The notes under the pieces: generated by a model
Seen by the model: the letters and a program-made list of their open reading frames with translations, nothing else
Told to the model about the DNA's origin: nothing
Databases searched by the model: none
Assembly: GCF_000400465.1 (NCBI RefSeq)
Contig: NW_008806280.1
Span: 420,001 to 452,000 of the forward strand
Source of the DNA: Wallemia ichthyophaga EXF-994
Taxonomy: Eukaryota; Fungi; Basidiomycota
Reading direction: 5' to 3'
DNA: 32,000 bases
Translations under genes and position numbers: made by a program
Shown: one piece after another, positions 1 through 25,702 of the stretch
How positions within the stretch are numbered: position 1 is the stretch's first letter
Layout of the letters: each line of letters opens with the position of its first letter

Positions 1-1080
1 AGTTTGAGAAGAACGGGAATAATTTCCGGTAAAGCGCCCTTTGCGAAATTTTTCGATTCTCTTTCGACAGGTTCATCAAATTCGGCAGCCTCGTTGGCTT
101 CCAAAGCCAATTCGATCTCCTCATCGCAGACAGTAGACCAGAATTCGATAGCCTGGAGAGCGACGCCTTCTTCTGGGTTTTGCATTCCGAGGACTGTCAA
201 GCCAAAGAGAGCTCTCTCCATGTAGAAGCCCATTTTGGAGTAGTAAATGTTCATAATCTTAACGAGACACTTGAAGGCGCCGATCTGAACGTCTGTGGAA
301 GAGGACTGAGTAGCCTCGCAGACGACCTGCATAATGTAATTCCTCTCGCCCTCGCGCTCGAAGTTGTCTCTAACAAAGTCGAGTGAGTTGTTGAGGGCGT
401 TGATAGCAGCATTTTGAACGTCAGTGGAGGGTTCCTCTTTGCGAGCGCCCTGGACAACAGCTGTAAGGATTTCATTTGAGCGAGCAGCGAGAGTGTCAGC
501 AGGCTGAAGTGGAAGCGTAGTTAGCACATGTCATCACGTTCCAAAGACAAAACTCACAACCGACTCGCAGACAAAACCAATAGCAACGAGCGTAGTCATA
601 CGCTTAGCTTCATCGGAGGCGTCAGTGACATTGTTGAGCAGCGTCGGCACGAGCTCTGGCCACTGGTCGTGAGGCAGTTCAATCGCGGCGACAGCGCTGA
701 TGACTTGGGCAGCGGCAGCACCGATAGCTTTGGTGGAGAGAGCAGCGAGTACAATCTGCTTGATCTGGGCGCGGTGGGTGGAGTCGAGTGCGAGCCACCT
801 CTGCGACTGATGCAGGGCTCTCGACTGATCCCGCGCGACAAGCGAATTCTTAATAGCCAAACCAGAGGCCTGGCGGATAAACGGCTGCTGGGACTCGTTG
901 GCCAATTCATTCGAGAGCGTGTAGATGTACGAAGGGTAATCCTGGCTGGCTGCTTGTTCGAGCTGTTCCGAGGCTGTAGCCCGGGCTTGTTGCTCTAAAT
1001 AATATTTATTAGTCTGTTGCCCAGCCTATTTTCAACCCACCTGGCGAGAGAGATGCAGATAACAAAGATGCTACGTCCAT
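1..1080 (-). CDS. KAP95: Importin beta-1 / karyopherin beta (5' part only; gene runs off the left edge). Exons 1080-1041, 994-558, 503-<1
   Basis: Spliced translation MDVASLLSASLSPEQQARATASEQLEQAA...ELANESQQPFIRQASGLAIKN...IAAIELPHDQWPEL...GFVCESV|PADTLAARSNEILTAVVQGARKEEP...NFEREGERNYIMQVVCEATQ matches the importin-beta N-terminal domain and HEAT repeats. Introns 995-1040 (GTGGGT..TAG) and 504-557 (GTGAGT..CTAAC..CAG) keep the frame. Confidence 0.95.
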
Positions 1081-1376
1081 GCTTCGTTTCGTGGTCGTCG
1101 CTGTGAGAAGATCAAATTCGCGCGTTTTTTGGTGTGTGGCTGGGTAAAATTATCTTTGGATATAAATCACAGCGTGTGCTAATCGTAATATATTTGTGCT
1201 CCCTCCCATCCCGCTCACCGCTCAAATGTCAAAACTTGTGCTGAGTTTATATCTCTTTCGTGGAGACCGTCCGTAGAAAGAGATGAATGTGATATTCGTA
1301 TTCCCCGTTGTACGTTTCCCCTGGATCTCTAGTCTCTGCTTCTTCACCGCCGACTGCCATCTCCACCGCCATCTCT

Positions 1377-3101
1377 ATGTCGAAAGCCGTGCCCATACGC
1401 CCGCCAGACGCTGCGCCGTCACCAAGCACACCCACAACCCCCAAATCCCAAACCGCTGTCCCCATAAAAGCATCGACGCCAGCGTTTGTACCCTCAGCCG
1501 CGGCACTCGCAGCGACGCACACGACGCACACGACGCAATCCCCCACCAAGACAGCCAGTCCGTCGGGGTTTGCGGCTACAGCGCCAGTATTTATTCCCAA
1601 GACGAGTTCGCCGTACGACGAGCAAGGCGATGAGGAAGCGACAGCGCCAACAGGAGCGCAATGGGAATGGAGTGGCATGGACAGCGAGCTGAGCGGGATA
1701 TACGACAATTCTACCAGCTACCCACGCCACCCACTCCAGTACCATCTCTACGTCCCTCCACCGCCATACAAGCTAATCCACAATGTAAATCTCTCCCAAT
1801 TCTTCCTCCATCAGGACACACACAAGGCTATAACTGAAGCGCACGAGTCACAGCTACGTGCACCTCCACCTGGGCTGCGTCTGCCCGAGCGACTGCACGT
1901 CTACCGCGACCTCTATCCGCTAGACGAGGGTATCGGGCCAGGTGTAGGATTGGCGAGTTATCCGACGTACGTCTACCGCGCAACATCGGAGAGAGACGGT
2001 GCTCGTTACGCGCTGCGTCGCGTCGAAGGCTTTCGCCTCACATCGCAAGAGCCTTTGAGTGTAGTGGACAGATGGCGTCGATTGCGTCATCCCCATGTCG
2101 TTCCTCTCATAGAGGCATTTTCGACGCGCTCTTTCCACGACTCCTCCCTCATTCTCGTCCACGCTTACTACGCTAATGCCAAGACACTTGGCAGCATACA
2201 CCAGGCCAACGCACTCAACCCGCACCCGCCACCACTCGTGGAACACACGCTGTGGGTGTATCTCGTACAGATCGTGCAGGCAGTCATGCACATACATACA
2301 CAAGGACTAGCTGTGCGCTGTATCAACCCCTCACGCGTTCTCGTCACGGGTAAGAATCGTCTGCGGTTGAATTGTGTTGGTGCGATGGACGTCCTGCTGT
2401 ACGATGATTTCGCAAATGTTCATACTCACCAGCAGGAGGATCTTTCCGCCGTTGGTACCCTCCTCCTCACTCTCGCTCTGGGCAATTCGAGCACCGTCAC
2501 CGCTAACCCTACCAAGGCCATGGAGTTCTTTAGCAGACAGTACGGGCCTGATTTGCAGCGAATCGTGCTGTGGCTGCTGGGTAATAGATCACCACTCAAA
2601 ACTGCCCAGGAACTTTGGGGAATGGTGCTCAAAATTAAACCCGCTGTTGTCGCTGAGTTGCTCGATGCTAGCGTTAGCGCGGGCGATACCCTCACAGATG
2701 AACTCGCCAAGGAGGTGGAGAATGGCAGATTAGTTAGATTGTTGTGCAAATTCGGTTTTATCAACGAGAGAGCAGAGTGAGCTGAGAGTCTCGTATCAGG
2801 TTCTTTTCTAAACTAATCACTCTTAAGATTCGATCTCGACTCTCGATGGTCAGAGACTGGCGACAGGTATATCATCAAACTCTTTCGAGATTACGTCTTT
2901 CACCAGGTCGACGAACATGGGAAACCAGTCCTCGACATGTCGCATGTCCTCGTCTGTCTCAATAAATTAGATGCTGGCGTTGATGAAAGTCTGATGCTCA
3001 TCTCGCGCGACGAGCAGAGTTGTCTCGTTGTGTCTTACAAAGAGGTTAAACAGTGTATAGAATCTGCATTTGGGGATCTTAAGAGGGAAACCGGTGTGTA
3101 G
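1377..3101 (+). CDS. PAN3: PAN2-PAN3 deadenylase subunit Pan3 (pseudokinase plus C-terminal knob), ~557 aa. Exons 1377-2776, 2828-3101; true start could lie further upstream
   Basis: Contains YKAT-like [50 protein letters not shown]-like [20 protein letters not shown] and, after intron 2777-2827 (GTGAGC..CTAAT..AAG), [25 protein letters not shown]...LNKLDAG, all Pan3 hallmarks. Confidence 0.95.
1513..1537 (+). repeat. 9-bp coding tandem repeat (CGACGCACA x ~2.7) encoding THTTHTTQ in the Pan3 low-complexity N-terminus
   Basis: Read directly: cgacgcaca cgacgcaca cgacgca. Confidence 0.8.
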
Positions 3102-3142: not shown

Positions 3143-3845
3143 TTAAGCAGCCTCGTCGAAACGCTTGCCAGCTTCTTGCATATCCATCACATTCCAGATA
3201 GCGTTGAGGTAGTCTGGCTTAACGTTCTTGTATTGGAGGTAGAAGGCATGTTCCCAGATATCAATTCCGACAATTGGGGTGAGGTGAGTGAGTGGGTCCT
3301 GGTTAGCGGTAGTAGCGACTTCAAGACGCTTGGCCTCCTTGTTGTAGCCGAGCCATCCCCAGCCGGAGCCCTGGATAGCAGCGGTAGCCGCGTTTACTTT
3401 GCCTTTAAGGGCGTCGAAGCTGCCGAAGTCCTTGTTGATCTGCTCAGCTAAGCCACCTGATGGAGCAGTTCTGCCGCTGTCTGGAGTGAGGTTCTTCCAG
3501 AAGAGTGAGTGGTTGATATGTCCACCGCCGTTGAATTTGAGTGCTGGTTGGAGTGCAATCAACGTCTTGATGTCGTTTGCGTTTTGTGCCTTGACGTATG
3601 ACTCTTCAGCTGCGTTAAGTCCGTTTACGTAAGTAGCGTGGTGCTTTGAGTGGTGGGTAGTCATCTGATATGTGTTAGAAAACTCCTTGTGGCAAGCGAC
3701 CTGGACTCACTATGTCAGAGCTGATGTGTGGCTCCAATGCGTCGTAAGCATATGGGAGTGGAGGGAGTGTGTGCTTCAAACGCAAAGCAGTGGTTGCGAA
3801 AGAGCGCGATTGTTGTGGGAGTTGCTTGAATGCGTTGGCGAACAT
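3143..3845 (-). CDS. SOD2: Mitochondrial Mn superoxide dismutase, 218 aa. Exons 3845-3711, 3664-3143
   Basis: Presequence-like [22 protein letters not shown] followed by [19 protein letters not shown], metal ligands in HHSKHH, GHINH and [11 protein letters not shown], and the QGSGWGWL motif. Intron 3665-3710 (GTGAGT..CTAAC..CAG). Confidence 0.97.
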
Positions 3846-3919: not shown

Positions 3920-4684
3920 TCAAATTAATGAATTTACAAAGTGAGCAAAAGAATCATGTAGAGAGTGCAAGTTATTCACTTTTCTTTCGTCACCCTCCCT
4001 GTATTTGCCTGTCTTTACTAAAATTTTCGCTAGAGGTAAATCTGTGCCCAGATCAGACAAAGCGTCATCGCCAACTATAGCAACATCTTTGTAGTCTTGC
4101 TGATTTATACCAAGCTGATCTAAAGCGGTTATGAAGAAAGACGAGCTGGGTTTCCCGCAGATGAGGGGAGATTTTCCGGATGCAGACTGTAAAGCATGTA
4201 TGAAGGGGCCAGGACCTAGGCTAAGTTGGTCATCTTTGTCTTGGAAGTATAAAGAGGAGTGTGTTGCAATGAGCTGTGATTGAGGAATGTCTTTGAGAAT
4301 TCTGAAGGCGACGTTCAATGAGTGGTAGTCGAACTTATCAGGAGCCAAACCGACGACTACAGAGTCTAACGGCTTTGTAGAGTCAACAAGGCCTTCAAAG
4401 TCTTTAGAAGCAGATTGAGTGAGTAGGAGAAGTGGGTTGAGATTGTTATCGCGGATATGCTGGCTACAGGATGATAAAGGAGTTATGAGGTCGGATAGAG
4501 AGATATCCAAGCCTAGCTTTGTTGTCAAATCAAAGTGTGCATCACTGTGGCTCTGTTTTGAGGCATTTGAGAGCAGCTTGTGTGGTATACTCAGTCTAGA
4601 TAGAGCAGCTACTACTGAGCGTTGAGTTTGATTATCGTTTACTATAAGGGTACCAGAAATATCAATTAGAACTGCTTTGAACAT
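3920..4684 (-). CDS. HAD-superfamily subfamily IIA hydrolase, HDHD2/LHPP-like, 254 aa, intronless
   Basis: Motif I VLIDISGTL, SNAS motif II, cap region DSVVVGLAPDKFDYHSLNVAF, LSLGPGPFIHAL, motif III/IV GKPS...VAIVGDDALSDLG and C-terminal LVKTGKYR. Confidence 0.9.
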   Translation of the reverse strand: MFKAVLIDISGTLIVNDNQTQRSVVAALSRLSIPHKLLSNASKQSHSDAHFDLTTKLGLDISLSDLITPLSSCSQHIRDNNLNPLLLLTQSASKDFEGLVDSTKPLDSVVVGLAPDKFDYHSLNVAFRILKDIPQSQLIATHSSLYFQDKDDQLSLGPGPFIHALQSASGKSPLICGKPSSSFFITALDQLGINQQDYKDVAIVGDDALSDLGTDLPLAKILVKTGKYREGDERKVNNLHSLHDSFAHFVNSLI

Positions 4685-4769: not shown

Positions 4770-6361
4770 ATGTCAAAACCCTATACAGATTACAAGCTAA
4801 TATCGAATAATTCAAATGGATTCAAATACAACGTTATGAAATTGAATAGCAATAAGCAAGTGGATCTGTCAACCCTCCCACAGCCACTCAAGCTTAACAG
4901 AAAAGATCCAAATCATTTACTCACTCCAGTTCCAAAGAGGGACGAATCTGGTAAAATAGAGTTGGATGACAATCATAATCCCATTCTAATCGATCCAATA
5001 ACAAAGCAAGATATTCCACCTATACAGCAACCTTCCAAGCACTTTAAGAAGAAGACAAAGCAGGTTTTCATGGCAGATGAATCCACCATTGAGTTGAGAA
5101 AGTCGGAGAGATTGCCTTGGATTATGGAATCTGGCGACTCTATCTGGCAAGGTCAGTTGGATGGAAAACCACAGGATCAGTCTTACGTGATGCTCATTTT
5201 CAATAAAAATCATGATTTCAAGGTTGAGCCGACTAATAAAATCTACAAATTCAATCCACAACCAAATTATAACACGCTATCAATTGATGAGGCTGATCAG
5301 ATATATAGTAAAGGTGTTGATAATCCTTGGTTTATGAGAAATAAAGCTAGTAATGACGGTGGTAGTGTTAATGACGGTGCTGTTGATAATAACAATCCAT
5401 CTACCTCCCATCAACGTCTACAATCTATTCTTAATCACGCCCCAGACTCCTCAAAACCCTCCACTCAAAAACGCATGCAAGTCGATAGAGGTGAAGTTAA
5501 AGATGAGACCGTAGACGCCCTATTCGATGAAATGGAGTTTGACGAAGAATTCCAAGATGACGACGAACACGTCATTCAAGATAACCAAGATGACGACCAG
5601 CTTAAAGAACTCGAAGATAAGATTAAGAAGGAGATGCACCAGGCTAACATTGGTCACGTCGAACAAACTAGCAATCTCGATGATGTTGAAGAAGATATTA
5701 AGCCGTTCCAGAAATCCCACACGGAGAAGGAAATGAAGAGGTTTTTGCGTCGACATGACAAGTCTAACGCAGAGGCTTACGATTCTGACAATAGTGATGT
5801 GAGTTGGGTGTATAAAATGTACTGAGGAGATTCCCAACTAACCACACAACGCAGGACGACCAAGAAGAAGAAGAGCAACGCAAGAAGGAGCAAGAAGAGC
5901 AGGAGAAACGTCAGCTCGACGCACAAGAAAACGACAAGGCAACATCGCTGACAAAATCAATAAAGAAAGAACACACACCTGCATCACTTGCAGCCCAACA
6001 AGTTGCACGCAGGGCCACATCACCATACAACAAACAACGCTCTTCTTCACCTTCCTCCAAACGTAGTAGAACGGATATCGACGATCGGCACGACAGTAAG
6101 AAGATTAAAGTCAAGAGGGAGAGTATGTCACCATCAGCCTCCCCTTCCACACCACCCAGCTCGGCAGATCTGCAGCTATTGCAAGAGGATGAAATTATCG
6201 CGTTCCTTAGAGGAAAGTCTCTCACTACTAGCGACCTTATCCAGCATTTCAAAAAGAGATTTAAAGCTCAGCCTAGGAATAGAGAAGTTATTGGTAGTGT
6301 ACTTAAAAAGGTCGCTAGCAGAACTAACGATGGCAAGCTCCAGCTCAAGGAGGGTCTTTAG
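4770..6361 (+). CDS. TFG1: Transcription factor TFIIF large subunit (Tfg1/RAP74), ~511 aa. Exons 4770-5798, 5855-6361
   Basis: N-terminal YNVMKL..PLKLNRKDP..KKKTKQVF..ERLPWIMES..WQGQLDG..FKFNP..TLSIDEA dimerisation region, acidic middle, C-terminal winged helix (EDEIIAFLRGKSLTTSDLIQHFKKR...ILKKVA-like VLKKVA). Intron 5799-5854 (GTGAGT..CTAAC..CAG). Confidence 0.85.
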
Positions 6362-7073: not shown

Positions 7074-7546
7074 TTGTGTGTTGTAGTCTATTGTCCCTCC
7101 TAACGCCACGAAAGACCCAAAGATGTAAATTGCTAGGATTTAAACACTGTACTGTTGTCACGATATAAACGTTACGTCGCATTAATAATTCGAATTTCCT
7201 CGATGATCTTGTGTTTTCCCTTGTATTGTGCTTTCTTGTGCTTGACTAAAGTAATTGATAGTGCAGTTCGCACTCAGATTATACCAGCAAACGCGCCCTT
7301 TTTCGAACCATTTACCTTCTCTGCCCCGACACCCCCACCCACTCCGTCTTCTCTCTTCAGATTTGAAGATCTGCTGATCAGTACAAGTGCAAATGTGAGG
7401 CTAATATTGCGCTATCGCTACTACCACGCAAATACCTCCATCTTATTTTATTTTCTTATTTGTCTGCTTAGAAATCATCTGCATACGTCAATATAAGCCT
7501 ATTCGTGCTATCCGGTCTGGCTTCAAACAATCATCATTTACACATA

Positions 7547-8472
7547 ATGAGCCTGCCAAACGTATTCTTTATTACTGGAACTTCAACTGGCTTCGGTAGA
7601 GAGCTCGTTCTTCAGCTTAATGCTAGAAAAGAGAAGGTAATTGCCACAGCCAGAAATACCGATAAGATCAAGGACTTTGAGCAACTTGAGCATGTCTCAA
7701 TCATGAAGCTCGATTTGAACAGCAACGAGGAGGAAATCATCAGCGTCGTACGTGACGCCCTTAAGATCCATGGCCACGTAACCCACCTCGTCAACAACGC
7801 TGCATACTCTGTAGCTGGATGTGTAGAGGAAGTACCTCTCGCGCAATCCAAGAAGCAATTTGACGCTAACTACTGGGGTACAATTGCCCTTACGAATGCA
7901 TTCCTCCCTCACTTCCGCGGCCGCACAAGTGGCGAGAAGTTCATCGCCACCATTTCCTCACTTGTCGGTATTACAACCATGCCTTTCGTCAGCTACTACT
8001 GCGCTTCCAAGTTTGCTATCGAGGCTTCATTCGAGGCACTCAAGCTTGAGACTGCTCACTTGGGCATTAAAGTGTTGTTGATCGAACCAGGGTAAGAATA
8101 CTGTTAATGATGGTGTTTTCCCACTAACCCTCTACTTGTAGTTACTTCCGTACTAGCTTCCTTCAAGAGGGTAGCAACATCCAGCCTCCTCAAAACCCGA
8201 TCTCCGACTACGCGCCAATTAGTGGTGCAATGGAACGCGTGTTCAAGCAGCAGAATGGTGCTCAGCTCGGTGATCCTGCCGTTGGTAGCGAGAGAATCAT
8301 AGAGCTCTTGACCAACACGGGTCTCGTCAAGCAGATCAGCAACGGCGAGATCCCTACCAGAGTCGCATTGGGCTCTGACAGCTACGAAGGCATCGTCAAG
8401 AAGGGCCAAGATCTTATCGACAACGCCAACAAGTGGAAGGAGTTTTCACTTTCGACCGACTTCAAAAACTAA
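7547..8472 (+). CDS. Classical short-chain dehydrogenase/reductase, copy 1, 291 aa. Exons 7547-8091, 8142-8472
   Basis: TGTSTGFG (TGxxxGxG), VNNAAY, catalytic SS and YCASK (YxxxK), IEPGYFRT. Intron 8092-8141 (GTAAGA..CTAAC..TAG). Confidence 0.93.
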
Positions 8473-8625
8473 TGCATTGTTGTAACGACAGATTATTTAC
8501 GTTTGAAATTGCGCATTCAATTGGTTTACCTTTCCTTGTGAAGACGTCGCTCATCTCGCGCTTTGGAAGCTGTGTCTCAAGATATTCAATACGTTCGATG
8601 CGTATAAACCGTTATACGTTGGCTG
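8433..8625 (+). repeat. High-identity direct repeat with ~11185-11377, covering the SDR stop codon and ~150 bp of 3' non-coding DNA
   Basis: Shared gtggaaggagttttcactttcgaccgacttcaaaaactaatgcattgttgtaacgaca...ccgttatacgttg at offset 2752 with scattered substitutions. Confidence 0.9.
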
Positions 8626-8733
8626 CCGGGATATGTTGATGCTGTTTCTATTATAAACTTTATTGAAGTTACGTCATCTTGTGAGAACGCCATTCATCCA
8701 TTTCATTTAATCAATGTCTTTCTTCAAACCATA

Positions 8734-8986
8734 ATGAGCCTACCAAACGTATTCTTCATTACGGGAACAGCAACTGGCTTCGGTCGAGAGCTTGTCCTCC
8801 AACTCAATGCGCTGAAACAGAAGGTTATAGCAACGGATCGAACGATTGATGGAATAAAAGACTATGAGCAACTCGAGCATGTCTCAATAATGAAACTCGA
8901 TTTGAACAGCGACGAAGAAGAAATAGCTGGTATAGTGCGCGATGCTATCAAGATACACGGCCACGTTACGCATCTCATCAACAACG
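8734..8986 (+). repeat. Near-identical direct repeat (253 bp, 2 mismatches by eye) with 10251-10503
   Basis: Base-by-base comparison at offset 1517; identity ends abruptly after ATCAACAACG. Confidence 0.9.
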
Positions 8987-9712
8987 CCGCTTACTCAGTA
9001 ACTGGATGCGTCGAGGAAGTCCCACTATCTATAGCACAACGTGAATTCAACGTCAATTACTGGGGTACAATTAAAGTAACCAACTCATTCCTTCCTCACT
9101 TCCGCGGACGCACGAGTGGAGAAAAATTCATATTGACGGTCTCCTCGATAGTCGGCATCAACGTATGGCCATATTTCAGCTACTACGCTGCTTCCAAGTA
9201 CGCGATTGAGGCATCGTTTGAAGCACTCAAGATGGAGACTCAGCACCTTGGCATCAAGGTGTTGATGGTCGAACCAGGGTGAGCTACTGCGAAGATAGTA
9301 ATGACCACTGAAAATTTACAATATTCAGCTACTTCCGTACCAGCTTTCTCAAAGAGGTGAGTTTCCTTTTATCGCATCTCGTTACGTCATTTGCTGATGA
9401 AAACATCAGGGAAGCAACGTACAGCCACCTGGGAACCCAATTGCGGACTACGAGCCCATCAGAGGATCTATGGGTAAGGAGTTAAAAGAGCAGAATGGTG
9501 CTCAAATCGGCGATCCTAAAGCTGGATGCGAAAGGATCATCGAGCTGTTGATGCACACCGGCCTTGCAAAGCAGATAAGTAACGGTGAAATACCCACTAG
9601 AGTCGCATTGGGATCTGACAGCTACGAGGGCATTATAAAGAAAGGTCAAGATCTTATTGATAACGCCAACAAGTGGAAACAGTTTTCAGTGTCTACTGAC
9701 TATAAGAATTGA
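8734..9712 (+). CDS. Classical SDR, copy 2, 291 aa. Exons 8734-9278, 9329-9356, 9410-9712
   Basis: TGTATGFG, INNAAY, YAASK, VEPGYFRT. Introns 9279-9328 and 9357-9409 give the same 876-nt CDS length as copy 1. Confidence 0.93.
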
Positions 9713-10250
9713 TGATAGCAACAACAGCTCAATGAAGTTTTTGTGAATTCCGTTTGCTTGTCCTGGTGTGTGTCTCGATGACGATGCTCTGTGACTTTCG
9801 AAGAACAAATCCCAGTAAGTATTCTAGGGTCGCATCTCAGCTTAACAGCCAAATAGACTGCTCAAGCCCATCCCATTCAGTGATATTTTACATGCGATAC
9901 TCAGATACCCATTCGAGATCGGTAGCAATTGATTTCCTCTTTTGGTAACTTGAGCAACGCAGAACGAATTATGAGACCAAGTGCATAAAAAAACTGTTCG
10001 CCGATGGACGGGACATCGTGCCTTAATACATAATTGACTCCGCTGCTTGAAGCCAAGCGAATATACCCAGCATGTCAGTCGAAGATTTCTTGAATGAATC
10101 ACAAGCAAGATCAAGACATTACGTAATTGCATATAAACTTCGATCATTAAAATTCATTTGTGCCTCCACCTCAATGTGACTTTATGAGACACATGTAGCC
10201 TATCCAGTTTAGCATCAGACGATCATCACGTACCACACTAAATATCAAAT

Positions 10251-11224
10251 ATGAGCTTACCAAACGTATTCTTCATCACGGGAACAGCAACTGGCTTCGG
10301 TCGAGAGCTTGTCCTCCAACTCAATGCGCTGAAACAGAAGGTTATAGCAACGGATCGAACGATTGATGGAATAAAAGACTATGAGCAACTCGAGCATGTC
10401 TCAATAATGAAACTCGATTTGAACAGCGACGAAGAAGAAATAGCTGGTATAGTGCGCGATGCTATCAAGATACACGGCCACGTTACGCATCTCATCAACA
10501 ACGGAGCATACTCGGTGAATGGATGTATGGAAGAAGTTTCGCTCACAGACGCCAAAAATGAGTTTAATGTGAACTATTGGGGCACAATTAAGGTGACGAA
10601 CGCATTCCTGCCGCACTTTCGCGGTCGCACTAGCGGAGAAAAGTTCATTACGACCTTTTCCTCTATTGCCGGTATTCAATCGTGGCCATACTACGGATAC
10701 TACTGCGCCTCCAAGCATGCTATCGAGGCGTCATTTGAAGCACTCAAGCTTGAAACCAAGCATCTCGGTATCAAAGTATTGCTCATTGAACCGGGGTGAG
10801 TTGAACCTCTTATACAGAATCACCATCGTTGATTGTATGAACTTGCAGATACTTTCGAACAAAGTTCCTTCAAGAAGTAAAGTTTCCATATTTCTTCCGC
10901 CAATGCTGACAACACGCCCAGGGAGTCCACGCAAGACCACCTAAAAACCCAGTCTCAGATTACGCTCCGATCTGCGAGTTCATGACCAAGAGCGTGACAG
11001 ACATGGGTGCATCTAAACTCGGGGACCCTAAAGTTGGATGCGAAAGGATAATTGAGCTCTTAACGAACACTGGCCTTGCCAAGCAGATCAGCAACGGCGA
11101 AATACCTACCAGAGTCGCATTGGGCTCTGACAGCTGCGAAAACATAACGAAGAAGGGTCAAGAACTCATCGATAACGCAAACAGGTGGAAGGAGTTTTCA
11201 CTTTCGACCGACTTCAAAAACTAA
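10251..11224 (+). CDS. Classical SDR, copy 3, 291 aa (mosaic of copy 2-like 5' and copy 1-like 3' sequence). Exons 10251-10795, 10849-10876, 10922-11224
   Basis: TGTATGFG, INNGAY, YCASK, IEPGYFRT. Introns 10796-10848 and 10877-10921; 876-nt CDS. Confidence 0.92.
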
Positions 11225-11679
11225 TGCATTGTTGTAACGACAAATTTCTTACGTTTGAAGTTGCGCATTCAATTGTTTTACCTTTCCTTGTGAAGACGTC
11301 GCTCATCTCACGCTTTGGAAGCTCTGTCTCAAAATATTCAATACCTTCGATGCGTATACACCGTTATACGTTGCCTGATGCGGAAGATACAATAATATCG
11401 TCAAAACCAATCAAAATCTCATTGACAATTCCAGCAGGTGAAAAGAGTTCTCAATTTCGACCAAATTCAACAACTAACACTATTAATGATAGCATAAAAC
11501 TTATGTTTCCGGTTTTCAATTATTGCCTCGCTTTGTATTGTAACTTCTCTATCCCATAATACATGAATCGCTATCGCTTGTGTATATCGCTTGCAAACCT
11601 TGGACTAACTTAAACGTCATCAGGTACAGATCATTAAGTCTGCCTTCGAAACGTCCATAAACACCACGAAAAACTTATC

Positions 11680-12653
11680 ATGAGCACACCAAACGTGTTT
11701 TTCATCACCGGAACCTCGTCTGGCTTTAGGAGAGAGCTTGTTCTCTAGCTTAATGCCTTGGGAGAGAAGGTGATTGCTACAGCCACAAATACTGATAAAA
11801 TTAAGGACTTTGAGTACCTTGAGCATGTCTCAATTATGGAACTCGATTTGAACAGTGACGAGGAGGAAATAGCTAGCGTAGTGCGCGATGCTATCAAGAT
11901 CCATGGCCACGTTACGCGCCTTATCAACAATGCAGGATATGTAATGATCGCATGCATGGAGGAAATGTCAATATCACAAGCGAAGCATCTAATGGATACC
12001 AATTATTGGGGCGCAATTAGCTTAACAAATGCCTTTTTGCCTCATTTCCAAGGACGTAAGAGCGGATAGAAGTTCATCGCCATCATTTCCTCCATTGGCG
12101 GTATTCAAAGACTGCTATCCTTGAGTTACTATTGTGATTTCAAGTATGCTCTCGAAGCATCTTTTGAGGCACTTAAGATGGAGACTGAACATTTCGGACT
12201 TAACGTGATGCTGATAGAGCCAGGGTGAGCCCACCTGTGAAGAAACAATCTATCCTCTAACAATAAACAGCGGATTCCGTACAAGTATCCTCGAGGAGGT
12301 ATGCTAATTTCACCTCACACCATCGTCATTACTGACACAAATACCAAAGAAAGCAGGTGTCCAGCCGCCAGAGAAACCCAATATCCGATTACGATTCCAT
12401 TAGCGGAGCTCTTTATAGAATGTTGAAGACCCAGATTGAAATTTTTTTCGGCGATCCTAAAGTTGGATGTATGAGGATCATCGCGCTCTTGACAAACACT
12501 GGTCTTGCCAAACAGATTGGCAATGGTGAAGTACCCACCAGAGTCGCATTGGGATCCCGTAGCTACGAAAATACAATTAAGAAAGGCGAAGAGCTCATTG
12601 ATAACGCTACTAAGTGGAAAGAATTTTCATTTTCGACGGATTATAAGAATTAG
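11680..12653 (+). pseudogene. SDR copy 4, pseudogene
   Basis: Collinear with copies 1-3 but has in-frame TAG at 11746-11748 (Gln in paralogues) and 12067-12069 (Glu in paralogues), TGxxxGxG changed to TGTSSGFR, and a +1 insertion near 12374 when the homologous acceptor (12349) is used. Introns at 12225-12270 and 12299-12349 retained. Confidence 0.9.
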
Positions 12654-15800: not shown

Positions 15801-16354
15801 CACTTTTGAGTCTCACGCCGCTCTATGCCATGTCTGCTGAAGGTGACATACTCACTGACGAGAAAAAGGCTCAGAAGGAATACAAGACGAATGAAAGCAA
15901 ACGTAAAAGACCAGGAAGGTAGGTGCAATTCCTTACGCTTCTTATACACCCACTCAAACTCTAAAGACTTATCATATTTGATGCGGTTGGAAAAGCTTCC
16001 GGGGTGTCAATGAAGGCGTTTGAAAAAATTTCCGAACTTTTACATCACGCTTTGGATGTTATCCTGAGATGCGAATGTGAGCTCGGGTGCGTAGGCTGCG
16101 TTGAAGGTGAAGTTAAAGATGGCCAGGCATCGACAAGTAAAATTGGTGCCATTGTCGTGTTGTCTTTCTTGGTGGGTAGGCAGTTGTCGATGGATGATGT
16201 ACCTGATCAGGTGGGTGAGAGTGGATATGTGTAATTAGATTATTAACCTATATCACAGGCTCCATTCGTGCAATCTCAGCAGTTTATCTACCCAGACACA
16301 ATAGTACAAGCTGAAACAATCACAAATGCCGATGTAGAATTAGAAAAACAGTAA
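12812..16354 (+). CDS. HRQ1: Hrq1/RecQ4-like DEAH-box helicase with C-terminal DUF1998 Zn domain, ~1067 aa. Exons 12812-12967, 13018-13112, 13161-13193, 13240-15426, 15479-15731, 15779-15918, 15967-16210, 16259-16354
   Basis: Q motif LFAHQAQA, Walker A STSTASGKS, FPTKALAQDQ, DELH, TSATIGNP, YRGGY..RRRIE..ATNALELGID, QQIGRAGR and terminal CECELGCVGC (CxCxxxCxxC). Seven introns of 46-52 nt keep the frame. The start codon is less certain. Confidence 0.93.
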
Positions 16355-18737: not shown

Positions 18738-18845
18738 CAAGGCATTACCCATTTCATATCGCACACAATCTGTATTTTTGCGTAATTTATTCACCATGTT
18801 GTACATTTGACTAAATAATTGAGAATGGTATCAATCAAACACAAA

Positions 18846-21800
18846 TCAACTTCCGAACGAGGTTGCAAGAGCCTGCTGCACCTGCAAGATCTGTTCCGAT
18901 ACAGCTGACAAGGTACCTTCATCAAGACGGTTGAATCTGTAAAAGAATAAGTCAGCATGAGCGCACTCTTTAAACTTCCACACCCACTCATCGAAACATC
19001 CCCACGCGCCAACCTGGCATAACCCAATGAAGATACGTCCCATGGCCTGGAAATCAAACGTTTCATCACAGCAGAAAACCAAGACAAATCTACCTAATTG
19101 TACACCAAGAGCCTTCACTGACTCTGTTTTACCTGTACCCGCAGGTCCGAATGGTGCACCACCAAGTTGTGAGTTAAGTGCTTGTGTCAAAGTCAGGTAG
19201 CACCTGTCGGTTAAAGGCGTCTGAACCAATCTGTCTGGTACACCTAGGTATTCGTAACCGTAATCGAAAGTAGCATCAGCCATGTGAACACTTAACCGGT
19301 CCATTGATATTGCCACATTGGTGTCCAAGTAGAATCTCATTTGATATAACCAATTGAAATCTCTGTGGCTGCTAACTTCATCTCTGATAAGCGATCTCAG
19401 AACGTCTCTTTGGTGTACTAGTTCAGTAATTAAGTGTTCACATTTACGTCTCTGTATAGTTGGTAGGTTCGTAAGGACGGTATCGGCCAAGACGTCAAGT
19501 GTGCGCAGAATAATAGACTGCTCAGCTCTCAGATCTAATCCAGCCTGCAGAGCTTTGTCGACTATGGTAGAAAACTCAATTTGTGTTGCAAGGACTACCA
19601 ACTGAGCTGGATATTTGTTCATCCATTCCAAGAACATGTCGATATCGAGTTTTTCTTCGTTTGAGTAGAACTCCCTCAACGAAACGACAGAGTCAGTAAG
19701 CAAGTCTGCCAAAGACACCCTCATCTCACTCTCTATCCTAGCCAACCAGTCGTTAATCTTCGGATAGTCTTTCAATTGAATGATATTTGAAAAATTTACG
19801 ATTTCGCCCTCTTTTGACACCATAGCTTGTATTTCGGTGATATCATCATTCAACACGACGTTGGAAATACCAGCGAACATTTTTTTCAAATGTTTCATAA
19901 TCCTGATGATGTCCTTGCTGTTACCAATGATCTCAAGTAAATCTTCATCACCGACAAAGTAGAATCTAGGGAATGATGAACGCTCGCGCTCCAAATATTC
20001 ACCCAATGCTTTCTGTACCTTATTGAGCGTTTCTGCGAGCTTTTCCATGCGCTTCTGTACATCAGTGATGCTCAAAACCTCCAAAACGAATGGTGCTTTC
20101 TTGACACCTTTAAGAATATTGTAGAACTCTGTATTGATGGTCTGGAATTTTTGACTCTCCATTGGAAGCAAATGTTTTATATCCGCAGATCCTGAGAATA
20201 TTCCTTCCAAATAAACCCACTGTCTCTGTACATCTATCCACAAGTTGAACAGATTGTGTACACGAACCAGTTTGTCTTCCCACGACCGAGCATCATCTTC
20301 AAAGACCTTAAAGTAGGGCGAGTTAGACATTGCATTAAGTGAGTTTGTATGCTCAGTGCATTGCGAGAATAACTCATCCCAGCCCTTGATCAAGAAGCAC
20401 TTGTTTTGATAATTGACTAGTTCAAGTTGATAGTTTGACCACGTTTCGCGAACTTGTTTCAAAAACTCCTCCAACGCCATTTCACCAGCTGCTTGGGTAA
20501 TCACATCTCTTATCAAGGACTCATTCCGCTTCAAATCAACGTCATAGATATTACCTAGTGTCATGTTGTTTGGCGAGTAAACGCGGTTTATCTTTAAACT
20601 CTTAAACAGCTGATTCCAATGGCGGTCATGTAGAGCCTCGGAGCGGAGGTCTGAGATAGTTGAGTTGAGCTTTAGGTAGGACTTCAGAGTTTCTTGAACA
20701 TATTCAAATGCACTGTACTGGCGCATCCTGCTCGGCATTTCGTTGGTCGAATTGAGCAGATTCTCCAACGATACACGCAATTTGCGTGGTTGCAGCGAAG
20801 CCCAAGTCGTCTCCTTTAGCTCTGCTATCTGGTCCCAAACACCTGAAAGCGCTGTCCACACAGCACGCAGATCCTTCAACTCTTCAAGCACAGGCTCGAG
20901 GCGATCATCATTCATATGTTCAAGGTCAAGAGCCTGACTGAGTGTTAGATATGGATTGATTTGTATGTGACACTCACCTCCTTAGCCCTGAAAACCAGAT
21001 CATACTGACTCTTCAGCTGTTCTACGCGCAATCCGTAGATGTTGATTGTATTCATGGCCTGATCAGCGCGTATATTACCTTGAATCGGTTTGTTATCCTC
21101 CCATTCCTTGATGATCTCTTCTATCTTATTACGAACAATCTTATCCTCAGCATCGATCTTGAGCTGCAGACCAGACAACTGCTCCAGAATGAGGTCATTC
21201 TTACGCTTGAGGATTTCATTGAAAGCACTCCATTCACCTTGTACCTGATCAACCCAAAGCCAGTCAGATGGGAATTGGTAGCGCTGCTTTTCAAGCGTCT
21301 TTTCACTCTCAATAAACAAAGCAATTTCAGGCTCCCACTTTCTGGCTCTCTTTTTGATATCCTGAACGAAAGTGATGAAAGACACAGCCTGGACTGTAGA
21401 GCTACCTTCTATAGACTGCGTTTCTAATTCGTAGCGAGCTTTTTGTATAGCAGAATGAGCCTCTTTCATTGCATCTTTCAACTTCTGCCCAAATCGAGTG
21501 ACAATATCACGTTGCCAGAAATCATACTTTGCATTTACCTTCACTTGCACCTGAGCAAAATCCACAACAGCCGCACCGAATGAGTGTTGAGTGTCAGAAG
21601 TATCAAATGTACTTCTTGTCTTTTTTATCTCACTTAACAGCTGCTGCCACAACGCTAATGAGTCACCAAGACGACTGTAAACCTGTTCGCCTTCCAGATC
21701 CCATAAGGATTGGAACTGTAGCCATTTACCGACATATGAACTTACTTCCTTCACCTTTTCTTCGATTAAAGCGAATGGTTTGGCTAGCGTCTCGAATGGT

Positions 21801-24800
21801 AGCTTGGTGAGGAGTGTGGTGTAAGTGTTGTCGTATTCAAACTCTGGTACGCGGCTGAACTGCAGACCGATTTCGTACCGCGAAGACTGTATGCGCGGGA
21901 GGTTACATATTACACCCAGCCAAATGTGCAATTGCTTATACCAATCTGTGCGGGAATGCTCAACCGGTGGATCGACGTAGATCACTTGGTCTCTGATACG
22001 AATTTCATGATATAATTGCTCCAACTCTATAAAAACTTCGTTATCGTGCTTGGCTTTCTTCATAATTGCCTCTTTTGATCGACTGACTGGTGCCTCTTCT
22101 CTACTTCTATTGAAAGCGACGCACCATTCGTCAATAATCTGCTTTACACGCTCAAGTAAAACATTTTCAATCTTAGAGTCCAACTTCTCAACCCAATTAT
22201 TCAGATTAGTGTATCCTTCCAAGTTGAGCTTGTCGATGGTCTTTTGAATAGATGTCAGGTGAGAAGCGAAGATCTCTGCTTTGAATGGACAAGTGACTAG
22301 CTCGTCAATTGTTCTCATCACTTCATTATACGTGTCAATAAGATCATCGGTTTTGTCCTTAATAATATTAATATAGTTAAAACATCAGTCACCGAACTCA
22401 CCTGCAATACTCCAACCGCACTAGCAAACTCTCTTATAAAGTACATATGTCTCCCTTCGCGTCCTTCTATACTTGAAAGAGCCCCAAAGCGAGTGTCATA
22501 GGTATTAACAAAGAATTCCCATCTTAATGGCATACCCTTAGTGATTATGTTTTGCGCTTCAATTCTATACTCGGCAATCAAGGGCTCAATGCCTGGGTTA
22601 GCAGTGATTCTTTCGACTGTCAAGGAATACGTTCGGACAGTTTCCATCAAACTGACTGCATGTGGGTAGACACGCTTGGCGTCTTTAGCTATGTTGATGA
22701 TAGCATGCGGAACTTGGAATTGTCTCCAGAGAAGATTTCTGACCTCTTTAAAGAGCGTTATAACTTGTGGATCAAAATTAACACTGAGCTGATAAACATT
22801 TAGTTCGCCAGTAACTGAATTACGAGTGCGGCTAATTTCAAACAACCGACCTTCAATACGCATGTCACGACGATTGATTTCATGTAGCCAGGCCTCGAAG
22901 ATTGGACGCGTGTCAAGCTTTTTTCTGAAGGAGGTACTCTCACTTTGCAGCTTAGCTCCCTCAGCATACAAATCCCAACCCTCACCAAGGACATCCTCAA
23001 CACGCTTCATGTACATGTTCAACTGCCTCTCGATCTGTTTGGCCCATATAATTGCGCCAGCGATTGGCGGTATATCTCTGAGCTGCGACATGTGGAATGC
23101 CTCAGTGTTTCTGTACTGTGTTGTAAATTTGCCATGTAGTCGCTTAATATCTTCTTTGACAGAATCGATGAGCTGCGTTTGGTATTCTGAGATGGCGCCA
23201 CGAATCTAGATACATGTCAGGCAAGTCATTGGTTCTAGGAGAGCACCCACCTTGGGTCTAACGAAGAGTGCATTGTAGTAACCGAAGACTCTAAACATCT
23301 CAGATGCATTACGAGCAGTACCTAGGAGGTCCCTGAGACGAGCAATGATCTGATTTTCGACGCGTGCAACACGCTCGTTGTAGGCAGTTTCAGCGGCGAT
23401 CCAAATTTCAGTACCCTCTGTGAGTGTTTTAGATAAGACATTTTAGTAATGAAGACGACCGACCAACTGAAATATCCAAGACATTGACGTTTTTCAGAGT
23501 GTCATAAGCTGCCTTTACTTCGTCCTCCATATCGAGATCGGTGAGATTGTCGGCACCAACCCCTGTACCGGCTTTGGTGTTTCTTGTAGCAGTCATGTTG
23601 CGCAATTGCTCATGCTGCTTGCGAAAGTTACGAAGATACGCACACCTCTCAGCCAACTTCCAATGTGCTGCGTTGATTTTGATAGGAAGAAATTTTTCCG
23701 AGCGCTTTCTGGTTACTTCACGTGCGACGTTGGTAAACTCCTTCAAAACGTCGTCCCAGACTTTGAATGCGGAGTCAGCAGCGTTGATGGAGCGCTCAAA
23801 ACTCTCGTACTCCATGTACATTAGTCTGTGCGTTTGGAGTACTTTAAGCATTTGGTCGTTGAAATCTTTTGAGATAGCTTCGACTAATGGTAACGCGCGT
23901 CTGATTGGGTATGGTGATAATTTGAGCTTCTTGTTGATGTGACCGAATATAAGATATAGACTGTCTTGTATCTTTTGAAAGTCTGTAGCTGAAAGCAGTT
24001 CGTCTAATGGGAAATCCTTCATTAGTTGGTTATACTTGTGAACAATATCGGTTGCCTCCTTCAAACCGGTATCAGCGATAAATGAGACCGTAGCATGAAA
24101 ACGTTTGGCATATTTGAGAATTTCCAATGTGAGCATGATTGGTTCGGACTTGAGTTGTTCTTCAATACCTTCTAAAGCTCTTTCCATACTAAGCCAGAAG
24201 TTGATTTCTTGAGAGGCAGTTCCACTGGCGACATCTCTATTCAGCTTGGTAACATTTCTGATCTCTTTGATCCAGCTATTAACATCGTTCTGAAGACGAT
24301 TGAGAAATGTGCTGTCATTGAGAAGTGATTGTGGCTGTACATCTGACGGTGCAGGTCGAGTTCCAGCGGCATGTGCAATGGTTACAGCGTCCCTGACAGC
24401 GGAATGAATAGCAAGATGAGTCTCTGGAATCTCAACATTTTGCTGTAAATGAAGCAGTGATAGTTCTAACTCTGCAAACTTCTTTTTTGTCATTGGAATA
24501 CCCATCTTGGAATCTGCGTCTTTCGATTTACTGACGTCGTTTCCTTTTCCTTTGGCATTGACGAATGCATCAAAGTAGGGAGCAGCGGCAAGGTGCACAA
24601 GAGCATGCAAGACCTCATAACCGCCGTCAGCGAGGTTGAGAATGACGAGTTGGGAAGAAAGTGGATCAACCGGAGAAAGGGTTGGATACCTCTTTAGCAT
24701 GAAAACGGTTGAAACGAGATTAGGAGGATGAGTCAGAGTATGTGTCAGATTGTAAGTCAATCTTGGAGGATCGTCCTGCGTGCGTAGCTGCTGGATGTAC

Positions 24801-25015
24801 AAACCCATCAAAGACTGGTCATTGGCGAATCTGAGGATATCTTCGTCTGTACTTGCGTTCCAAAGACTAATTAATTCGCTGCTGTCCGCGTTGATTAGCT
24901 TAGGGAGTAGATCCTCGAGATATGCTTTGAAGGAATTCGCGTCAAGACTCTCTTGAATTGGCTCAGTGGCTGGCGGAGGTTCTGGATTAATTGGAGTCGC
25001 GTCTACGGCTGACAT
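18846..25015 (-). CDS. Cytoplasmic dynein heavy chain, N-terminal polypeptide only (tail, linker and first half of AAA1), 1979 aa. Exons 25015-23464, 23417-23251, 23205-22402, 22357-20978, 20933-18988, 18936-18846
   Basis: DHC_N1 ([18 protein letters not shown]), DHC_N2 ([18 protein letters not shown]), AAA1 entry [17 protein letters not shown], Walker A GPAGTGKT (19148-19125), Walker B CFDE|FNRL, then stop at 18848-18846. Five canonical introns of 44-51 nt give a 5940-nt open frame. Confidence 0.95.
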
Positions 25016-25083: not shown

Positions 25084-25702
25084 ATGAGCGGCCCAGCAGA
25101 GACTAAAGTATTAGCAGTGTGTTTGGGTAATATCTGCAGATCCCGTCAGTCTGCCCTTGCAGCCCCACGCACACAAATCTAAATTCATCTCATAGCAATG
25201 GCGGAGGGAGTTCTCAAACAAATCAAAGACGAGAATAACTTGCCTGTGTTTGTGGAATCTGCCGGTACTGCTGCTTACCACGAGGGCGAATACGCAGACG
25301 AAAGAACGATATCCACACTCTTAAATCACGGAATTACGATGGATTCACTCGCTAGGAAGGTCAGGCAGAGTGATTTCAATGAGTTCGACCACATACTCGC
25401 CATGGATGGCAGTAACCTTTCAAACCTCCTCAAAATAGCTCCAAAGAACTGTAAAGCCGATGTTAAACTCTTTGGTTCATATGGCGATGGCAAGGCTATA
25501 CAAGAGTGAGTTGATGAGTCTTGTGTCCTCTTCCCGCTAACACACGCTTAAGCCCATACTACGGTGGACAAAGTAAATAAACACACTATAACATCACAAA
25601 CACTAACATACGATAGTGGGATTCTCAAAAACTTATGAGCAATGTTTGAAATACGGGAAGGCATTCTACGAATCTCTCGGCTACACTTTAAACGCAATAT
25701 AG
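25084..25702 (+). CDS. LTP1: Low-molecular-weight protein tyrosine phosphatase, 158 aa. Exons 25084-25144, 25196-25505, 25553-25572, 25617-25702
   Basis: P-loop VCLGNICRSPMAE across intron 25145-25195, ESAGTAAYH, FDHILAMD, and DPYYGG reconstituted across intron 25506-25552. Confidence 0.95.

Follow-up and report, generated by a model that had tools for sequence, protein, structure and literature searches.

What completes a cytoplasmic dynein 1 heavy chain whose gene stops inside AAA1, the module that carries the main ATPase site? The question is raised by a minus-strand gene in a stretch of 32,000 nucleotides from the salt-loving fungus Wallemia ichthyophaga EXF-994 (contig NW_008806280.1 of assembly GCF_000400465.1, positions 420,001 to 452,000, forward strand; the whole stretch is called the window here). 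The gene is very probably the 5' gene of a naturally split heavy chain, of which the two parts, called N-half and C-half below, would be translated separately and would then assemble non-covalently. The finding is not new: Brunsch et al. (2015, PLoS One, PMC4540427) and Kollmar (2016, Mol Biol Evol, PMC5100056) have described it, and dynein heavy chain is the name that the deposited proteins already carry; the break after 1979 amino acids (aa) inside AAA1, the partner gene and the split itself have been known since 2015-2016. What is added here is detail: where exactly in the structure the break falls, strong purifying selection on both halves, and the linkage of the halves on one scaffold, 127-194 kb apart and with an orientation that differs between species.

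Four long minus-strand open reading frames (ORFs) between positions 18846 and 25015 are joined across five short introns (44-51 nt, all GT..AG) into one frame of 5940 nt, encoding 1979 aa. The spliced model was compared with the deposited protein EOR01533.1 (= P0346, W. ichthyophaga EXF-994) and shows 0 differences over 1979/1979 positions; window 8846-32000 is 100% identical to scaffold KE007230.1 (assembly GCA_000400465.1), and a window coordinate equals the KE007230.1 coordinate minus 420,000. Pfam matches on the product are DHC_N1 (tail), DHC_N2 (linker) and AAA_6 (start of AAA1); the part of AAA1 that is present comprises strands S1-S3 with Walker A and Walker B. The best database match is a 1979-aa protein of W. 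mellicola (92% identity), and the best named matches are cytoplasmic dynein heavy chains (50-60% identity, 99% of the query covered). By its tail, linker and AAA1 with both Walker motifs, the gene is the DHC1/DYNC1H1 orthologue. The original prediction, made from the letters of the window, had named tail, linker, the Walker A motif GPAGTGKT and Walker B; all four are borne out by the Pfam matches and the located motifs (Table 1).

The same prediction had placed the last intron within the codon of the Walker B glutamate, and this is where it lies. A 1996-aa protein is given in several W. ichthyophaga strain annotations (e.g. P0347), with 17 extra residues between CFDE and FNRL; these longer models arise because the 51-nt in-frame intron was left unspliced in annotation. 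The W. mellicola intron at the same Walker B position is 45 nt long and has an immediate in-frame stop, so that the 1996-aa form is an annotation artefact and not a conserved isoform.

The stop codon of the N-half gene is genuine. An identical gene end, followed by a SRAP-domain gene, is found in four independent W. ichthyophaga assemblies; the W. mellicola orthologue is also 1979 aa long, with the C-terminus ...ALATSFGK, and all named Wallemia entries of the N-half cluster (90% cluster) end in ...ALATSFGS or ...ALATSFGK. Similarity between the DNA of the two species, 76.6% over the gene, ceases at the stop codon, and the gene that follows is an MFS transporter in W. mellicola and the SRAP gene in W. 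ichthyophaga; the stop codon is thus conserved independently of its flank. Because the same end occurs in several assemblies, strains and two species, misassembly and sequencing error are excluded, and a misassembly near position 18840, which the original prediction had raised against itself, is contradicted by the four assemblies and by W. mellicola. The 108 bp that separate this stop from that of the convergent SRAP gene, a distance predicted exactly, are ordinary spacing for the compact Wallemia genome: they are unremarkable because the neighbours at the other ends lie 68 bp (N-half) and 62 bp (partner) away.

The rest of the motor is encoded on neither strand of the window, as predicted. 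In tblastn searches of both strands, the longer dynein P0002 matches only via its residues 1-2051, and for the partner protein described below the sole match is weak (E = 0.02) and pairs its second P-loop with that of AAA1. The sensor-I motif expected in the prediction, FITMNPGYAGR, is not the Wallemia one, which reads differently.

A partner ORF starting just before sensor I, as had been proposed, was found by a database protein search with an 1807-aa composite query. In W. ichthyophaga it is EOR01434.1/XP_009267696.1 (P0364, cluster P0246; 2640 aa); its counterpart in W. mellicola has 2655 aa (cluster P0247), or 2640 aa in the CBS 633.66 model WALSEDRAFT_67017. The Pfam order in EOR01434.1 is AAA_6 (second part), AAA_5, AAA_7, AAA_8, MT, AAA_9, AAA_lid_11, Dynein_heavy, Dynein_C. 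All six AAA modules, the stalk with its microtubule-binding domain and the C-terminal domain, and hence a complete motor, are present not in the window gene alone but in both genes together, which sum to 1979 + 2640 = 4619 aa. A second, unlinked gene had been predicted to supply sensor I, sensor II, AAA2-6 and the stalk; the separate gene exists, and only the word unlinked has to be dropped, the two genes lying on the same scaffold.

In each of the two species a divergent Ipi1 gene lies 62-71 bp from the start codon of the C-half gene (L002 5939-6000, L007 5930-6000). Compared with its flanking genes (ubiquitin-like, succinyl-CoA ligase, UCH), the block formed by Ipi1 and the C-half gene has opposite orientations in W. 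ichthyophaga and W. mellicola, and for this reason the relative orientation of the dynein halves differs between the species. The differing orientation points to later inversions, and the original rearrangement is therefore not readable from the present layout. That the split arose through one inversion, of which one breakpoint fell within the gene, was considered and set aside: this fits the convergent layout of W. ichthyophaga, but in W. mellicola the halves run in the same direction and the block is inverted.

Two further observations concern the start of the C-half gene. The intergenic region shared with Ipi1 contains a conserved ACGCGTATACCCAA element, including an MluI-box-like ACGCGT. 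In the gene start itself (L002 6001-6252) three small introns separate coding exons of 23, 77 and 15 nt, with the sensor-I motif distributed between exons, and the same exon layout is seen in W. mellicola (L007).

AAA1 is bisected cleanly, with nothing lost or duplicated. Of the 327 positions of the AAA_6 profile, 1-117 match the N-half (ending at residue 1975) and 117-327 match residues 12-234 of the C-half. When the ends of the two halves are joined head to tail, they align as one stretch to human DYNC1H1 1829-2266 (E = 1e-178), and the only gap is one of 6 residues, at the junction. On the human chain the cut falls at E1984/H1985; Walker B (human E1959) precedes it, and the sensor-I asparagine (human N2019 = C-half N37) follows. 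The joined ends keep both Walker motifs as well as the pre-sensor-I hairpin motif and sensor I. A break inside AAA1 and near the pre-sensor-I loop had been predicted, and the profile is indeed cut at position 117, ahead of hairpin and sensor I.

The spacing from Walker B to sensor I is 45-67 residues in 143 unsplit dyneins, and the two Wallemia ends together give 62. Among the alignment examples shown of these 143, the variation sits in the loop between helix H3 and the hairpin. The AAA1 pre-sensor-I insert is a beta-hairpin located between H3 and S4 with the motif phi-x-phi-x-G-x-x-phi-x-phi, and crystal structures show it weakly ordered (Gleave et al. 2014, PMC4047620). In yeast Dyn1 the Wallemia cut corresponds to a position just before the H3-S4 insert, residues 1874-1892 according to the same study. 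The C-half begins this conserved hairpin motif at its residue 17, after a leader of ~16 aa. Judged from the alignments, the break is placed at the junction of helix H3 and the pre-sensor-I hairpin, which appears to be the only length-variable loop between Walker B and sensor I, a segment that otherwise hardly varies. A few unnamed gene calls from short contigs, metagenomes or transcript sets (P0129, P0225, P0056) also begin or end near this loop of AAA1; they are most likely truncated calls.

Purifying selection on both halves is strong. In the comparison of W. ichthyophaga with W. mellicola, divergence at nonsynonymous sites (pN) is 0.056 and at synonymous sites (pS) 0.83 for the whole N-half, and 0.077 and 0.77 for the whole C-half; synonymous sites are thus saturated (pS ~0.8). 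On the two sides of the break the picture is the same, with pN 0.054 for the last 150 codons of the N-half and 0.064 for the 150 codons of the C-half that follow its leader. Only the leader is unconstrained (first 16 codons, pN 0.40). Protein identity is 92% for the N-half and 88% for the C-half, no frame disruption is found in the 1979 + 2640 codons, and the catalytic motifs are all intact.

How the two products might make one motor can be outlined as follows. The N-half gene would be transcribed and translated alone, giving a chain of 1979 aa and ~225 kDa with the dimerising tail, the linker and the large subdomain of AAA1, which holds the central sheet, up to H3. The C-half chain, of 2640 aa and ~300 kDa, would supply the pre-sensor-I beta-hairpin, S4 with the sensor-I asparagine (N37), S5 and the small subdomain of AAA1 (sensor II site), together with AAA2-AAA6, the stalk with its microtubule-binding domain and the C-terminal domain. 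The two chains would join non-covalently through fold complementation. The canonical order of the AAA+ sheet places S4 between S1 and S3, so that the S4 contributed by the C-half would have to fit in between these two strands of the N-half; the N-half linker would lie across the ring formed by the C-half. Insertion of S4 and the linker across the ring would make a very large interface between the halves, so that a docking peptide would be unnecessary. The outcome would be one ordinary AAA1 ATP site, rebuilt, in an ordinary motor. Separate translation is suggested by the expressed sequence tag (EST) data of Kollmar and by the conserved stop and start codons.

Several points weigh against a split chain that assembles in this way. 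That the Wallemia halves come together physically is argued by analogy with Ustilago Dyn1/Dyn2; the absence of bridging transcripts goes back to one sentence of Kollmar 2016 (PMC5100056); a central beta-strand contributed by another chain is a demanding fold to assemble; and a helper sequence is found at neither end of the break, the N-half tail having 4 aa and the C-half leader ~16 unconserved aa. The Wallemia dynein might accordingly depend on an assembly route of its own, for instance co-translational pairing or a chaperone, or the supply of one half might be used as a switch for the motor; we regard both as unlikely. The split could also serve as a natural template for engineering a conditionally assembled dynein.

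Four other explanations were weighed. Spliceosomal trans-splicing of the two pre-mRNAs would yield a single full-length heavy chain, and pieces of the split axonemal dynein genes of Giardia and Spironucleus are in some cases joined by mRNA trans-splicing, in the summary given by Kollmar 2016 (PMC5100056). In W. ichthyophaga the stop is indeed closely preceded by a GT (...ACC TC|GTTCGGAAGTTGA), which is in phase 2 like the start of the partner's exon 2, and a join at that GT would give a loop of normal length. This candidate donor is not conserved, however, W. mellicola reading ...ACT TCC TTT GGA AAA TAA there; stop codon and SFG(S/K) tail are kept in both species; the partner retains its ATG and a first coding exon of 23 nt, equal in length in both; and the termini are covered by EST/cDNA data, with no bridging reads reported (Kollmar 2016, PMC5100056). 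Trans-splicing into one chain is, on this balance, very unlikely; that some fraction of the transcripts is joined in this way is less likely than the assembly route or the switch considered above. Ligation after translation by a split intein comes close to a negligible probability. Inteins occur in dyneins elsewhere, and an Anaeramoeba protein among the matches (P0069) bears the name "intein-containing dynein heavy chain precursor", but the ~4 residues after H3 in the N-half and the ~16 unconserved residues that precede the C-half hairpin are much too few for intein halves, the two ends together exceed the human loop by just 6 residues, and a Pfam scan of both ends gives only AAA_6 and AAA_5, with no intein or Hint domain; the original prediction of no intein agrees with this.

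An artefact of assembly or annotation, the true gene being continuous and full length, is highly improbable. Nothing was found in its favour; the only oddity is the 1996-aa annotations, and these are accounted for by the retained in-frame intron; gene end and flank are identical in the four W. ichthyophaga assemblies, the same end recurs in many W. mellicola strains with a different gene downstream, and the partner has a start codon of its own beside the divergent Ipi1 in both species. Just as improbable is a relic, with the N-half gene or its partner a decaying pseudogene and Wallemia without a working dynein. Some fungi do live without dynein (Kollmar 2016, PMC5100056), but a truncated pseudogene lacking a C-terminal partner, which the original prediction had allowed for, is contradicted by the existence of the partner and by the purifying selection on both halves (pN 0.056 and 0.077 against pS ~0.8), whose undisrupted frames and intact catalytic motifs do not suit decay.

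The split heavy chain, as the preferred reading, agrees with what has been published. The comparison with published basidiomycete breakpoints that the original prediction had called for shows that this breakpoint is already among them: the DHC1 split of Wallemiomycetes "occurs after 1979 aa" (Brunsch et al. 2015, PMC4540427), and Wallemia DHC1 is "split within AAA1" (Kollmar 2016, PMC5100056), a placement with which the present data agree and which they refine. The W. sebi JGI proteins 59093 and 67017 are in the data table of Brunsch et al. 2015 (PMC4540427), and JGI 67017 is the C-half cluster identified here. The split DHC1 of W. sebi/W. mellicola is the same phenomenon in another species, with an N-half of 1979 aa in both, a break inside AAA1 and two genes; the window gene is the W. 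ichthyophaga orthologue, its model ending at residue 1979 and AAA_6 position 117/327, with the second gene (EOR01434.1) elsewhere and with its own start codon. No mention was found in the text of Brunsch 2015 or Kollmar 2016 of how far apart the halves lie (194 and 127 kb), of their differing orientation or of the Ipi1 neighbour, and a literature search gave no newer paper on Wallemia dynein.

Unsplit dynein 1 (human DYNC1H1, PDB 5NUG/7Z8F; yeast Dyn1, PDB 4AKG) is one polypeptide, and the joined Wallemia ends can be aligned to the human chain with nothing lost. Having all six modules on one chain sets dynein apart among AAA+ machines. Basidiomycetes have broken this one-chain rule three separate times, and the split in Wallemia goes furthest, since there the main force-generating ATP site would itself be made up of two polypeptides. 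Three independent basidiomycete splits are listed by Brunsch et al. 2015 (PMC4540427). In Ustilago maydis the products of Dyn1 and Dyn2 are reported to be translated separately and to be found in one complex (Straube et al. 2001, cited by PMC4540427 and PMC5100056). As far as these citing accounts go, U. maydis Dyn1/Dyn2 and the genes of other Ustilaginomycotina are likewise broken inside an AAA module, but the break lies in AAA4, before the stalk, so that the AAA1 site comes from one chain, and the event is independent. In a protein search, Ustilaginomycotina Dyn1-type proteins have ~3150-3200 aa and read through the Wallemia break position; the window gene, broken in AAA1 at residue 1979, is not of this type. 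The Dhc1/Dhc2 genes of Agaricomycetes and Dacrymycetes (Schizophyllum commune; PMC4540427) resemble those of Wallemia in being two, non-adjacent on the same scaffold, and in having no added interaction domain at the break. They differ in the position of the break, ~residue 1180, between the dimerisation region and the motor, which leaves the whole ring on one chain, and they too go back to an independent event. Agaricomycete Dhc1-type proteins have ~1160-1190 aa in the protein search, whereas the window product is uninterrupted through ~1180 to 1979.

The Wallemia split can be regarded as a natural experiment on the tolerance of the AAA1 fold to interruption, and its break as a ready-made site for designing split, conditionally assembled motors. 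For biochemistry and structural work it is still an attractive target, and apparently an unstudied one.

Table 1 Coordinates of the dynein genes, their features and the nearest neighbours; positions are those of the window unless a scaffold or contig is named
Feature	Position	Strand	Remarks
N-half gene, cytoplasmic dynein 1 heavy chain	18846..25015	-	ATG at 25015; stop TGA 18848..18846; 6 exons
Exons of N-half gene	25015-23464, 23417-23251, 23205-22402, 22357-20978, 20933-18988, 18936-18846	-	spliced model
Walker A / P-loop of AAA1, GPAGTGKT, residues 1897-1904	19125..19148	-	aligns to human DYNC1H1 1906-1913
Walker B, CFDE, residues 1947-1950	18988..18998	-	third base of Glu codon = 18936, first base of last exon
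Last intron, 51 nt, phase 2, GTGGGT...ACAG	18937..18987	-	interrupts Walker B Glu codon; in frame, stop-free
Last exon, helix H3 of AAA1 + 4-residue tail + stop	18846..18936	-	breakpoint; AAA_6 positions 1-117 end at residue 1975
AATAAA hexamer, possible polyadenylation signal	18786..18791	-	55 nt 3' of stop codon; consensus match only, weak evidence
SRAP-domain gene, 328 aa	17705..18737	+	gene call; convergent downstream neighbour; stop-to-stop distance 108 bp to dynein
Low-molecular-weight phosphotyrosine phosphatase gene (LMWPc, 158 aa)	25084..25702	+	divergent upstream neighbour; 68 bp from dynein ATG
W. ichthyophaga N-half, KE007230.1	438,846-445,015	-	194 kb from C-half; convergent
W. 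ichthyophaga C-half, KE007230.1	236,483-244,816	+	194 kb from N-half; convergent
W. mellicola N-half, same contig as C-half	102,001-108,206	-	127 kb from C-half; same direction
W. mellicola C-half, same contig as N-half	235,571-243,908	-	127 kb from N-half; same direction

Upstream of the N-half gene, synteny (LMWPc, PSME4) is kept in W. mellicola. Just 3' of its stop a short TGATACCATT element (window ~18822-18831, minus strand; L001 ~16210-16219) is common to both species, although the rest of the 3' flank differs between them.

Elsewhere in the window, four paralogues of a short-chain dehydrogenase (adh_short) form a tandem array on the plus strand (7505-12653), the copies being 76-89% identical in DNA. 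Five further genes were named from their translations by eye, with no family search: an importin-beta-like fragment (534-905, minus strand); a PAN3-like protein (1308-2780, plus); a manganese/iron superoxide dismutase (3143-3664, minus); a HAD-type hydrolase (3920-4684, minus); and an acidic protein (4770-5825, plus). The G+C content rises to 52-54% in window 1-3000, coinciding with coding sequence.

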